Shown here: positions 9,117 through 13,719 of the stretch, one piece after another
How positions within the stretch are numbered: the first letter of the stretch is position 1
Layout: each line of letters begins with the position of its first letter
Source: Neoechinorhynchus agilis
Taxonomy: Eukaryota; Animalia; Acanthocephala
Assembly: GCA_051530055.1 (NCBI GenBank)
Contig: CM121341.1
Span: 5,930,784-5,994,783 of the forward strand
DNA: 64,000 nucleotides
Reading direction: 5' to 3'
Program-made: the position numbers and the translations under genes
The notes under the pieces: generated by a model
Seen by the model: the letters and a program-made list of their open reading frames with translations, nothing else
Told to the model about the DNA's origin: nothing
Database searches by the model: none

Positions 9117-12100
9117 TTGACGTGGTCAGATTTTTGTTGTTTTTTTGATAAAAGTTGATTTTTTTTGATATTTCAACGACACGTCACAAAAATATGATTG
9201 CACCTTTTTTTTCTAAGAATCAATGGATAAAAAGTATCGCGACTATGGAACCAGGAAAGCGTCGACCAATGAGAGACTGCGTTCTAGTCGTGATCAGCGG
9301 CGGTACAACGAAGTAGGTCATTGTTGTTGTTGTTGTTTGATTGTTGATCTGCGGAGACTGGAAGTTATGCGGTACAACGAAGTAGGTCATTGTTGTTGTT
9401 GTTTGATTGTTGATCTGCGGAGACTGGAAGTTATCGGCGGCGTAGGTCCCCGACGTTGACGTGGTCAGACTTTTGTTGTTTTTTTGATAAAAGTTGATTT
9501 TTTTTGATATTTCAACGACCACGTCACAAAAATATGATTGCACCTTTTTTTTCTAAGAATCAATGGATAAAAAGTATCGCGACTATGGAACCAGGAAAGC
9601 GTCGACCAATGAGAGACTGCGTTCTAGTCGTGATCAGCGGCGGTACAACGAAGTAGGTCATTGTTGTTGTTGTTGTTGTTTGATTGTTGATCTGCGGAGA
9701 CTGGAAGTTATGCGGTACAACGAAGTAGGTCATTGTTGTTGTTGTTGTTTGATTGTTGATCTGCGGAGACTGGAAGTTATCGGCGGCGTAGGTCCCCGAC
9801 GTTGACGTGGTCAGACTTTTGTTGTTTTTTTGATAAAAGTTGATTTTTTTTGATATTTCAACGACCACGTCACAAAAATATGATTGCACCTTTTTTTCTA
9901 AGAATCAATGGGTAAAAAGTATCGCGACTATGGAACCAGGAAAGCGTCGACCAATGAGAGACTGCGTCTAGTCGTGATCAGCGGCGGTACAACGAAGTAG
10001 GTCATTGTTGTTGTTGTTGTTTGATTGTTGATCTGCGGAGACTGAAGTTATGGGTACAACGAAGTAGGTCATTGTTGTTGTTGTTTGATTGTTGACCGGA
10101 GACTGGAAGTTATCGGCGGCGTGGTCCCCGACGTTGACGTGGTCAGACTTTGTTGTTTTTTTGATAAAAGTTGATTTTTTTGATATTTCAACGACCACGT
10201 CACAAAAATATGATTGCACCTTTTTTTTCTAAGAATCAATGGGTAAAAAGTATCGCGACTATGGAACCAGGAAAGCGTCGACCAATGAGAGACTGCGTTC
10301 TAGTCGTGATCAGCGGCGGTACAACGAAGTAGGTCATTGTTGTTGTTGTTGTTTGATTGTTGATCTGCGGAGACTGGAAGTTATGCGGTACAACGAAGTA
10401 GGTCATTGTTGTTGTTGTTGTTTGATTGTTGATCTGCGGAGACTGGAAGTTATCGGCGGCGTAGGTCCCCGACGTTGACGTGGTCAGACTTTGTTGTTTT
10501 TTGATAAAAGTTGATTTTTTTTGATATTTCAACGACACGTCACAAAAATATGATTGCACCTTTTTTCTAAGAATCAATGGGTAAAAAGTATCGCGACTAT
10601 GGAACCAGGAAAGCGTCGACCAATGAGAGACTGCGTTCTAGTCGTGATCAGCGGCGGTACAACGAAGTAGGTCATTGTTGTTGTTGTTTGATTGTTGATC
10701 TGCGGAGACTGGAAGTACGGTACAACGAAGTAGGTCATTGTTGTTGTTGTTGTTGTTTGATTGTTGATCTGCGGAGACTGGAAGTTATCGGCGGCGTAGG
10801 TCCCCGACGTTGACGTGGTCAGACTTTTGTTGTTTTTTTGATAAAAGTTGATTTTTTTTGATATTTCAACGACCACGTCACAAAAATATGATTGCACCTT
10901 TTTTTTCTAAGAATCAATGGATAAAAAGTATCGCGACTATGGAACCAGGAAAGCGTCGACCAATGAGAGACTGCGTTCTAGTCGTGATCAGCGGCGGTAC
11001 AACGAAGTAGGTCATTGTTGTTGTTGTTTTTGTTGATCTGCGGAGACTGGAAGTTATGCGGTACAACGAAGTAGGTCATTGTTGTTGTTGTTTGATTGTT
11101 GATCTGCGGAGACTGGAAGTTATCGGCGGCGTAGGTCCCCGACGTTGACGTGGTCAGACTTTTGTTGTTTTTTTGATAAAAGTTGATTTTTTTTGATATT
11201 TCAACGACCACGTCACAAAAATATGATTGCACCTTTTTTTTCTAAGAATCAATGGGTAAAAAGTATCGCGACTATGGAACCAGGAAAGCGTCGACCAATG
11301 AGAGACTGCGTTCTAGTCGTGATCAGCGGCGGTACAACGAAGTAGGTCATTGTTGTTGTTTGTTGTTGACAACGAAGTTATGCGGTACAACGAAGTAGGT
11401 CATTGTTGTTGTTGTTGTTTGATTGTTGATCTGCGGAGACTGGAAGTTATCGGCGGCGTAGGTCCCCGACGTTGACGTGGTCAGACTTTTGTTGTTTTTT
11501 TGATAAAAGTTGATTTTTTTTGATATTTCAACGACCACGTCACAAAAATATGATTGCACCTTTTTTTTCTAAGAATCAATGTAAAAAGTATCGCGACTAT
11601 GGAACCAGGAAAGCGTCGACCAATGAGAGACTGCGTTCTAGTCGATCAGCGGCGGTACAACGAAGTAGGTCATTGTTGTTGTTGTTGTTTGATTGTTGAT
11701 CTGCGGAGACTGGAAGTTATGCGGTACAACGAAGTAGGTCATTGTTGTTGTTGTTTGATTGTTGATCTGCGGAGACTGGAAGTTATCGGCGGCGTAGGTC
11801 CCCGACGTTGACGTGGTCAGACTTTTGTTGTTTTTTTGAAAAGTGATTTTTTTTGATATTTCAACGACCACGTCACAAAAATATGATTGCACCTTTTTTT
11901 CAAGAATCAATGGGTAAAAAGTATCGCGACTATGGAACCAGGAAAGCGTCGACCAATGAGAGACTGCGTTCTAGTCGTGATCAGCGGCGGTACAACGAAG
12001 TAGGTCATGTTGTTGTTGTTTGATTGTTGATCTGCGGAGACTGGTTATGCGGTACAACGAAGTAGGTCATTGTTGTTGTTGTTGTTGTTTGATTGTTGAT

Positions 12101-13719
12101 CTGCGGAGACTGGAAGTTATCGGCGGCGTAGGTCCCCGACGTTGACGTGTCGACTTTTGTTGTTTTTTTGATAAAAGTTGATTTTTTTTGATATTTCAAC
12201 GACCACGTCACAAAAATATGATTGCACCTTTTTTTTCTAAGAATCAATGGGTAAAAAGTATCGCGACTATGGAACCAGGAAAGCGTCGACCAATGAGAGA
12301 CTGCGTTCTAGTCGTGATCAGCGGCGGTACAACGAAGTAGGTCATTGTTGTTGTTGTTGTTGTTTGATTGTTGATCTGCGGAGACTGGAAGTTATGCGGT
12401 ACAACGAAGTAGGTCATTGTTGTTGTTGTTTGATTGTTGATCTGCGGAGACTGAAGTCGGCGGCGTAGGTCCCGACGTTGACGTGGTCAGACTTTTGTTG
12501 TTTTTTTGATAAAAGTTGATTTTTTTTGATATTTCAACGACCACGTCACAAAAATATGATTGCACCTTTTTTTTCTAAGAATCAATGGGTAAAAAGTATC
12601 GCGACTATGGAACCAGGAAAGCGTCGACCAATGAGAGACTGCGTTCTAGTCGTGATCAGCGGCGGTACAACGAAGTAGGTCATTGTTGTTGTTGTTGTTG
12701 TTTGATTGTTGATCTGCGGAGACTGGAAGTTATGCGGTACAACGAAGTAGGTCATTGTTGTTGTTGTTGTTTGATTGTTGATCTGCGGAGACTGGAAGTT
12801 ATCGGCGGCGTAGGTCCCCGACGTTGACGTGGTCAGACTTTTGTTGTTTTTTTGATAAAAGTTGATTTTTTTTGATATTTCAACGACCACGTCACAAAAA
12901 TATGATTGCACCTTTTTTTTCTAAGAATCAATGGGTAAAAAGTATCGCGACTATGGAACCAGGAAAGCGTCGACCAATGAGAGACTGCGTTCTAGTCGTG
13001 ATCAGCGGCGGTACAACGAAGTAGGTCATTGTTGTTGTTGTTGTTTGATTGTTGATCTGCGGAGACTGGAAGTTATGCGGTACAACGAAGTAGGTCATTG
13101 TTGTTGTTGTTGTTTGATTGTTGATCTGCGGAGACTGGAAGTTATCGGCGGCGTAGGTCCCCGACGTTGACGTGGTCAGACTTTTGTTGTTTTTTTGATA
13201 AAAGTTGATTTTTTTTGATATTTCAACGACCACGTCACAAAAATATGATTGCACCTTTTTTTTCTAAGAATCAATGGGTAAAAAGTATCGCGACTATGGA
13301 ACCAGGAAAGCGTCGACCAATGAGAGACTGCGTTCTAGTCGTGATCAGCGGCGGTACATCGAAGTAGGTCATTGTTGTTGTTGTTGTTGTTGTTTGATTG
13401 TTGATCTGCGGAGACTGGAAGTTATCGGCGTAGGTCCCCGACGTTGACGTGGTCAGACTTTTGTTGTTTTTTTGATAAAAGTTGATTTTTTTTGATATTT
13501 CAACGACACGTCACAAAAATATGATTGCACCTTTTTTTTCTAAGAATCAATGGGTAAAAAGTATCGCGACTATGGAACCAGGAAAGCGTCGACCAATGAG
13601 AGACTGCGTTCTAGTCGTGATCAGCGGCGGTACAACGAAGTAGGTCATTGTTGTTGTTGTTGTTTGATTGTTGATCTGCGGAGACTTAGGAAAGAAGTTA
13701 TCGGCGGCGTAGGTCCCCG
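9117..13719. repeat. Tandem array, about 340-bp unit x14, containing the ATG exon of PRP4 kinase
   Basis: ATG copies at 9223, 9563, 9908, 10239, 10577, 10917, 11252, 11579, 11910, 12247, 12585, 12931, 13274 and 13550. Variable (TTG)n tract. Most units carry an internal duplication of the donor-site block. Confidence 0.97.

Follow-up and report, generated by a model that had tools for sequence, protein, structure and literature searches.

A tandem array of the PRP4K start-codon exon in the genome assembly of the acanthocephalan Neoechinorhynchus agilis

Exon-bearing repeats are familiar as variable-number arrays and partial tandem duplications, such as the kringle IV-2 repeats of LPA and the duplications of KMT2A. 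Alternative first exons are clustered in the protocadherin and UGT1A genes and, as repeated U exons, upstream of mouse Snurf/Snrpn, and the spacers of ribosomal DNA contain tandem promoter units. The 5' untranslated region (5'UTR) monomers of mouse L1 are tandem promoter units as well (PMC9022269). Here these systems are compared with a tandem array of 14 head-to-tail units at the 5' end of PRP4K, the gene for a putative spliceosomal kinase, in a 64,000-nt stretch of DNA (the window) from Neoechinorhynchus agilis. Position 1 of the window lies at about position 5,930,784 of CM121341.1, a chromosome-scale scaffold of assembly GCA_051530055.1. The species is a thorny-headed worm (Acanthocephala) that parasitizes fish, and its genome is compact (46.2 Mb). 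The array is real in the assembly and accurately described, and a functional reading is less likely than a young structural variant. Our preferred reading, which we hold with moderate confidence, is a young, probably polymorphic partial tandem duplication of the PRP4K 5' end that is neutral or mildly dosage-altering and is not an evolved control device.

A preliminary description of this locus knew of no described equivalent. That was too strong, as exon-containing variable-number repeats, partial gene duplications, alternative first-exon clusters and tandem promoter monomers are all known relatives. With repeats of the LPA/KMT2A type the array shares head-to-tail, exon-containing copies, attributable to local duplication and unequal exchange, which are near-identical and look older at the edges. 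Those repeats, however, are internal exons with both splice sites that are translated in frame, whereas the units here hold upstream DNA, the ATG and a donor. Because they lack an acceptor, they cannot serve as ordinary internal exons. First-exon clusters are likewise rows of exons that have a donor, lack an acceptor of their own and share a single one downstream. Their exons differ from one another, have promoters that have been demonstrated and lie in kilobase units, whereas here the promoters are putative and the exons identical, so no product diversity would result. Promoter monomers resemble the array in being short tandem units (~200-350 nt) 5' of a coding region for which promoter activity and a copy-number effect are possible, but they carry no start codon, exon or splice donor.

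Layout and anatomy of the array

Fourteen copies of the PRP4K start-codon exon had been claimed, and the claim was borne out by Tandem Repeats Finder (TRF), anchor counts and alignment. The array and its parts are listed below, with a caret marking splice sites and junctions.

9117..13724, + strand: whole tandem array, 14 head-to-tail units (TRF, anchors, alignment)
9116..13165, + strand: units 1-12, long form, 327-346 nt, with an inner 64-69-nt duplication (TRF, anchors, alignment)
13166..13442, + strand: unit 13, short form, 277 nt, acceptor gone, no inner duplication (alignment)
13443..13724, + strand: unit 14, native 5' module of PRP4K, one donor, intact TTAG acceptor (anchors, alignment)
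12825..12894, no strand assigned: inverted pair TGACGTGGTC (12825-12834) and GACCACGTCA (12885-12894) with a 50-nt T-rich spacer, unit 12 as the example (motif search, alignment)
13532..13549, + strand: T8-CTAAG^AATCA directly 5' of the unit 14 ATG (read directly, alignment)
9104..9112, + strand: donor-like TAG^GTGAAA, GT at 9107-9108, 10 nt 5' of the array (read directly)

TRF reports one row at 9117-13425 (period 335, 12.7 copies, 95% matches, 4% indels, score 7758), and a second row with a period of 276 nt carries the array on to 13686. Anchoring and alignment place the unit starts at 9116, 9455, 9801, 10133, 10474, 10809, 11144, 11471, 11807, 12141, 12477, 12823, 13166 and 13443. The location given in the preliminary description stands, but the shared sequence reaches ~13724, slightly past the end at 13719 that it had assigned. 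The head-to-tail order, the high identity (14 units, 95% matches) and a constant junction are those of a tandem repeat: CCCCGACGTTGACGTGG is exact in 11/13 junctions, and the unit junction CCCCGACGTT^GACGTGG has 11 exact occurrences. CCCCGACGTTGACGTGG and GTTATGCGGTACAAC are both junction k-mers of the array.

The repeated segment begins 106 nt 5' of the ATG, takes in exon 1 (90 nt, preceded by a 5-nt leader) and intron 1, and ends 35 nt inside exon 2. In the upstream units the exon-2 stub is shorter (~29 nt) because the acceptor region is deleted there. The 5' part of a unit runs from TGACGTGGTC through a 50-nt T-rich spacer, the inverted partner GACCACGTCA and AAAATATGATTGCACC to T8-CTAAG^AATCA; the 3' part has 30 codons from the ATG to GAA^GTAGGT, followed by a (TTG)n tract and GATCTGCGGAGAC. 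The inverted pair is found in most units, and its motif occurs outside the array only once in the other 59 kb of the window. It is bZIP/CRE-like and a candidate promoter element; if transcribed, it would form a 10-bp stem (z = -2.7). Just before the ATG, CTAAGAATCAATG is identical in twelve units besides unit 14, and unit 9 has CAAG. This T8-CTAAG stretch may be an acceptor, and a place in the core promoter or 5'UTR is equally possible.

The start-codon region AATCAATGG has 13 exact copies within the array and reads AATCAATGTAA in unit 8 after a 2-nt deletion. TTTCTAAG also has 13 exact copies, with TTTTTTTCAAG in unit 9. Roughly two dozen competing donors had been noted, and 26 copies of the donor GAAGTAGGTC were counted, two in each of units 1-12 and one each in units 13 and 14. 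The second donor of units 1-12 belongs to the inner duplication, which is made up of the last 13 nt of exon 1, the intron and 8 nt of exon 2 (junction GTTAT^GCGGTACAAC). Upstream of unit 14 the acceptor region reads GAGACTGGAAGTTAT (20 exact occurrences) or a near variant, without TTAG. GAGACTTAGGAAAGAAG occurs a single time, at 13681, where it provides the acceptor AG at 13688-13689, the sole intron-1 acceptor in the array; unit 14 alone has GAGACTTAG^GAAAGAAGTTAT. As in a first-exon cluster, 26 donors face one common acceptor, TTAG^GAAAGAAG. First-exon diversity was not found, the exons being alike save for a Gly/Asp codon in three units, a substitution in unit 13 and probable sequencing errors.

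Most of this had been read correctly in the preliminary description: the T-rich tract, CTAAG^AATCA-ATG and GAA^GTAGGT donor of each unit, the second donor in most units (here units 1-12), the exon-2 acceptor joined to the last unit alone and the TAG^GTGAAA just before the array, which might serve a hypothetical non-coding leader exon as its donor. Its statement that every unit has the same 30 codons is true of units 4, 5, 7, 9, 10, 11 and 12, which match unit 14 exactly. It fails for units 1, 2 and 6 (GAT for GGT at codon 2), for unit 13 (one substitution) and for units 3 and 8, whose exons are frameshifted through small deletions resembling sequencing noise. A coding repeat on the minus strand (110-133-aa open reading frames in each unit) was considered and rejected, as unit length is not divisible by 3 and the frames had no matches.

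The PRP4K gene and its splicing

The gene downstream of the array has the following parts.

13550..16475, + strand: PRP4K coding region, 8 exons, 535 amino acids (aa) (splicing, domain and homology searches)
13550-13639, 13690-13841, 13888-14394, 14443-14580, 14625-14778, 15810-15924, 15976-16214 and 16263-16475, + strand: PRP4K exons
13550..13639, + strand: coding part of exon 1, functional copy, 30 codons (NCBI model starts at the ATG at 13550)
13640..13689, + strand: intron 1, 50 nt, GTAGGT...CTTAG, contains (TTG)n (junction the same in NCBI protein P0001)
13690..13841, + strand: exon 2, Arg/Ser-rich; the 3' end of the repeat is its first 35 nt (alignment)

The Pkinase domain covers residues 209-529. 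It is of the CMGC group and closer to PRPF4B than to DYRK, HIPK or CLK kinases: the match to the domain of human PRPF4B (4IAN; 6QX9 chain K) has E = 1e-139, compared with ~1e-46 for HIPK/DYRK. Identity is 58-59% with rotifer 'PRP4 homolog' proteins, the best named hits, and 51% with the Pomphorhynchus laevis protein. The N-terminal Arg/Ser-rich basic region is present in exons 1-2 and is much shorter than that of P. laevis or human. PRP4K appears once among the protein-search matches from N. agilis. Judged by its sequence, the gene is a true PRP4K orthologue, and orthology suggests a role in spliceosome activation. The domain, the PRPF4B match and the rotifer homologues uphold the kinase identity proposed earlier.

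The NCBI model ACOME3_001335 (P0001, 307 aa) takes the ATG of the last unit as its start and has the same 13639^13690 junction (...TACAACGAA^GAAAGAAGTTAT). It ends early because intron 4, with donor GTCCCT, is read through. The public annotation splits PRP4K into this model and a separate 93-aa gene for the last exons, and leaves the middle exons around intron 5 unannotated. Since the annotation consists of BRAKER models guided by RNA-seq, it gives indirect support to the 13639^13690 junction. The RNA-seq project of the species (PRJNA1223661, 74 stranded libraries) dates from 2025. The exon 1-exon 2 junction originally drawn from the last unit is identical in the annotated protein.

The seven PRP4K introns measure 50, 46, 48, 44, 1031, 51 and 48 nt. 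They were used as the standard for splice signals in place of a scoring matrix derived ab initio from short introns in the window, which was dropped as it gave mostly false candidates. The donor of intron 1, GTAGGT, is unlike the GTAAG form of 4/7 introns. Intron 3 (14395-14442) has an AAG acceptor (ACAACAAG^G), and intron 4 (14581-14624) has the donor GTCCCT. The signals of introns 3 and 4 are both needed for the conserved kinase motifs to stay in frame, which suggests a relaxed splice-site consensus in this compact genome. Because an AAG acceptor works in intron 3, CTAAG cannot be dismissed as an acceptor. True PRP4K acceptors are without long T tracts. In the neighbouring gene the ATG is preceded by T-rich sequence that contains no AG, so the T8 tract may be a mere promoter or 5'UTR feature.

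Within intron 5 (14779-15809) lie a GC-rich insert (~14800-15160) and, at 15163-15767, 3.6 tandem copies of a 166-nt repeat, as if a mobile element had inserted and local duplication had followed.

Splicing outcomes were computed in silico. Joining the first donor of any unit to 13689 yields the normal mRNA and an identical protein, and the second donor adds 69 nt (23 codons) in frame with the junction GTTATGCGGTACAACGAA^GAAAGAAG. The codon-2 G/A difference would persist into the mRNA. Joining a donor to the CTAAG before the next ATG adds 95 nt per step, with the chain junction TACAACGAA^AATCAATGG. With two chained copies the product is 117 aa long and terminates early in exon 3; from three copies upwards it is cut to 65 aa. 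The frame shift and early stop predicted for two chained copies were thus reproduced. Left unspliced, the clean long units 1, 2, 4, 5, 11 and 12 have 78-80-aa open reading frames with Cys runs, as had been foreseen for upstream units in general; the other upstream units, which have small indels or no inner duplication, fall short of this (1-73 aa). AATAAA and ATTAAA are absent within the array, which makes read-through plausible.

Unit 14, when left unspliced, is open for 282 codons (13550-14395) because introns 1 and 2 total 96 nt and contain no in-frame stop. When both introns are kept, the exon-3 frame is restored and exon 2 is read in another frame.

A single promoter 5' of 9117 might transcribe a non-coding leader exon with its donor at 9107, CTAAG^AATCA being the true acceptor and one of the 14 exons being chosen. 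The donor-like TAG^GTGAAA 10 nt 5' of the array would suit this arrangement, as would the T8 and AAG acceptor-like site 5 nt before each ATG and the AAG acceptor in use within PRP4K. Nearest-site splicing, on the other hand, would chain the 14 exons and yield 65 aa, a null allele of an essential gene, which would be odd in a consensus assembly. The T-rich tract without AG before the neighbouring ATG also argues that T-richness may belong to the promoter or 5'UTR. We consider this arrangement quite improbable.

The units had also been suggested as trans-splice entry sites. Like spliced-leader RNA genes they are tandem units with a short exon and donor and no acceptor, but the array exon is 95 nt long and includes a start codon. 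A search of 8500-16500 against Rfam gave no match at E <= 1, spliced-leader and snRNA-like families included, and the literature searched contained no report of trans-splicing in acanthocephalans. With the neighbouring gene also lacking an AG before its ATG, entry by trans-splicing is not supported, and by these sequence features the array is not a spliced-leader RNA array.

Origin of the array and its reliability

At the unit junction, CCCCGGCGTT of exon 2, which the intact gene continues with ^CGATAC, meets the 5' flank, AAAACGCTT^GACGTGG, at CGTT/CGCTT microhomology. Variants within the array form a nested series, from the intact unit 14 through unit 13, which is without the acceptor, to units 1-12, which lack it too and also carry the inner duplication. 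Edge units 1 and 14, as well as unit 5, have CGACACG, and the other units have CGACCACG. The TTG tracts measure 16, 19, 22 or 25 nt, in exact 3-nt steps, save for three tracts of odd length. The nested variants and the 3-nt steps point to stepwise evolution of real DNA, as an assembler loop would give identical copies.

These observations suggest an order of events. Microhomology-mediated copying at CGTT/CGCTT would have duplicated a 277-nt segment reaching from -106 of the ATG to 35 nt inside exon 2. The upstream copy would then have lost its intron-1 acceptor by the change of TTAGGAAAGAAG to TGGAAG, which requires at least two small events, and unit 13 looks like this intermediate step. An acceptor-less copy would next have acquired the inner 69-nt duplication, and unequal exchange or replication slippage would have multiplied it to give 13 copies, with older copies staying at the edges. 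On this reading the working gene is the last unit plus exons 2-8, with expression from that unit.

The working ATG is now separated by 4.3 kb from the DNA that once lay upstream of it. To our knowledge, PRP4K is essential wherever it has been tested. An essential gene at such a distance from its former upstream DNA probably has its promoter inside the unit. This is also the simplest viable route, since with a sole promoter 5' of 9117 nearest-site splicing would chain the exons and wreck the frame. The candidate in-unit promoter is the paired TGACGTGG motif, found once elsewhere in the window. Because the units are alike, every one would carry the same promoter. Transcripts that start upstream could then have their first donor joined to the acceptor at 13689, giving normal mRNA; they could be spliced to the CTAAG ahead of the following ATG, so that 95 nt are chained on and a premature stop results; or they could remain unspliced, with the 78-80-aa Cys-rich frame.

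If each unit does fire, the array could act as a dosage amplifier in which the cap-proximal exon 1 is spliced to 13689 and the amount of normal PRP4K mRNA scales with copy number. The 106 nt before the ATG, with their paired TGACGTGG motifs, are identical in each unit. Acceptors are gone from all 13 upstream units, which leaves one legitimate target; any first donor gives an identical protein and any second donor an in-frame addition of 69 nt; and long introns are handled, as the 1031-nt intron of PRP4K attests. Amplification would, however, call for introns as long as 4.4 kb where most introns of the genome measure 44-51 nt. The T8-CTAAG in front of every ATG could plausibly compete as an acceptor, and read-through from upstream promoters would disturb those downstream. 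We regard such an amplifier as rather unlikely. A bolder form, in which 14 autonomous modules of promoter, ATG exon and donor converge by long-range splicing on one acceptor and array length sets or buffers kinase dosage, would explain why the acceptor was purged from the upstream copies. It is an unlikely form too; if true, it would be a copy-number-tunable architecture of many identical first exons leading to one acceptor.

The age and setting of the array favour a partial duplication over an evolved device. Its near-identical copies mark it as young, which counts against an evolved regulatory device, as does the finding that six tandem arrays make up 14 kb, or 22%, of the window. Likewise, in the P. 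laevis orthologue, the one related locus examined and a distant one, no array of period >40 nt was found in the first 16 kb of the locus, gene start included. The tie between the array and the spliceosomal role of PRP4K may be a coincidence.

The preliminary description had offered a different idea, a splicing-dependent decoy or dosage control. In the form weighed here, the 25 extra donors and exon copies would be a decoy or poison-exon system that tunes PRP4K dosage to spliceosome activity. Chaining of exons would, in silico, give premature stops, and the intron-1 donor GTAGGT differs from the GTAAG of 4/7 introns. Fission yeast introns with weak splice sites depend on Prp4 kinase (PMC4701394), and self-regulation of many splicing factors runs through splicing coupled to nonsense-mediated decay (PMC3967051, among others). 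If extra exon-1 copies were included, the predicted premature stop would be like that of the poison exons of splicing factors. Those poison exons, however, are single, often highly conserved cassettes with proven regulated inclusion, whereas this array is missing from the P. laevis orthologue. Its near-identical copies also point to a very recent origin, and arrays are common in the region whatever the function of the gene. A decoy system is therefore very unlikely.

Several points weigh against a young partial duplication of this kind. The DNA came from ~50 worms pooled, and haplotypes were purged. The sequence quality of the array is poor: units 1-12 show 35 short deletions and 5 insertions, each of the latter a 3-nt change in a TTG tract. 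Support for expression from the last unit is indirect, coming from annotation and not from reads. The in-unit promoter is deduced from viability, which presumes that the array allele is common and homozygous-viable. The removal of the acceptor by at least two changes before amplification could hint at selection against mis-splicing, in which case the array would not be purely neutral.

The differences between units are mostly deletions of 1-5 nt, and few substitutions are real. The genes on either side are intact, and the window's shorter arrays have 0% indels. Deletion-biased noise that is limited to a long near-identical array has the look of a Nanopore consensus that could not be polished. 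The 'broken' exons of units 3 and 8 are thus probably errors, and the true copies are probably even more alike than the assembled ones. The number of copies has been estimated for a single path through the pooled material, and its exact value is unreliable.

The same noise raises the question of an artefact or an unrepresentative allele, whose length and details would come from a few noisy Nanopore reads through gap filling or an unpolished consensus, the true copies being far fewer or widely varying in number. The assembly is a MaSuRCA hybrid of Illumina and Nanopore R9.4 reads (HiFi negligible), followed by purge_dups, Hi-C scaffolding and TGS-GapCloser. Pooled R9.4 reads processed in this way would leave room for such an error, as would deletion-biased differences confined to the array. 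Protein searches with the full protein and its lineage-specific N-terminal 212 aa returned from this species the NCBI model of the same assembly alone, with no independent contig, no transcript contigs and no predicted product of upstream units. The supplement of the assembly paper does not mention PRP4 and has no details of gap closing. Three novel junctions, however, each recur 10-20 times consistently, the TTG tracts differ by clean 3-nt steps, and units 2, 11 and 12 have no indel relative to the consensus outside the TTG tract. Because these units are free of errors, the array is a consensus and not a raw read. We know of no tendency of Nanopore reads to create direct tandem copies. An artefact or unrepresentative allele is on balance unlikely.

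If the array is real and common, it is a natural experiment in which a spliceosome used to short introns (44-51 nt) faces two dozen identical donors and one acceptor, and it would test whether a multiplied promoter-plus-first-exon module shifts the dosage of an essential splicing kinase. If it is neutral and variable, it is one ordinary outcome of the local tandem duplication that is heavy throughout the region. In practice, users of this locus should be aware that the annotation splits PRP4K, that the array has Nanopore-type errors, and that short RNA-seq reads assign a unit through the codon-2 variant only.

The surrounding region

PRP4K, the array and the neighbouring gene lie between the arms of a 927-nt inverted repeat (5104-6030 and 16879-17805); the arms are 100% identical and 10.8 kb apart. 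Both contain the 5' part of a small gene (MSKSLTEIRSECGSS...), the 3' ends of which differ and form two distinct membrane-anchor-like tails. Recent gene conversion, an inverted duplication or an effect of assembly could account for the repeat, through which the PRP4K segment could become inverted. Another inverted repeat, perfect over 617 nt (42757-43373 and 61505-62121, arms 18.1 kb apart), likewise takes in coding sequence, with VNGLEDPWIPSFCCCLPCIEF... in both arms.

An 85-nt satellite at 19761-25287 has 65 copies over 5.5 kb (94% matches, GC 48%) and lies just 3' of the first exon (19041-19421) of a sirtuin-like gene. It may lie inside an intron of this gene, and a 94-aa gene annotated within the satellite is doubtful. 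Further tandem arrays in the window are the following.

29277-30659: tandem array, 205 nt x 6.8 copies
40900-42225: tandem array, 442 nt x 3
51756-52332: tandem array, 124 nt x 4.6

The 205-nt array was considered as a second array of 'ATG + GTGAGT' exons and rejected. It is intergenic, ~320 nt 5' of the ATG of a BOP1-like gene (30982), and contains none of its exons. Fragments resembling the C-terminus of a retroelement protein occur at 6172-6900 (- strand) and 49099-49455 (+ strand). They have the motif NILEPxNLCRLDSxRPD in common and are mobile-element remnants on both sides of the region.

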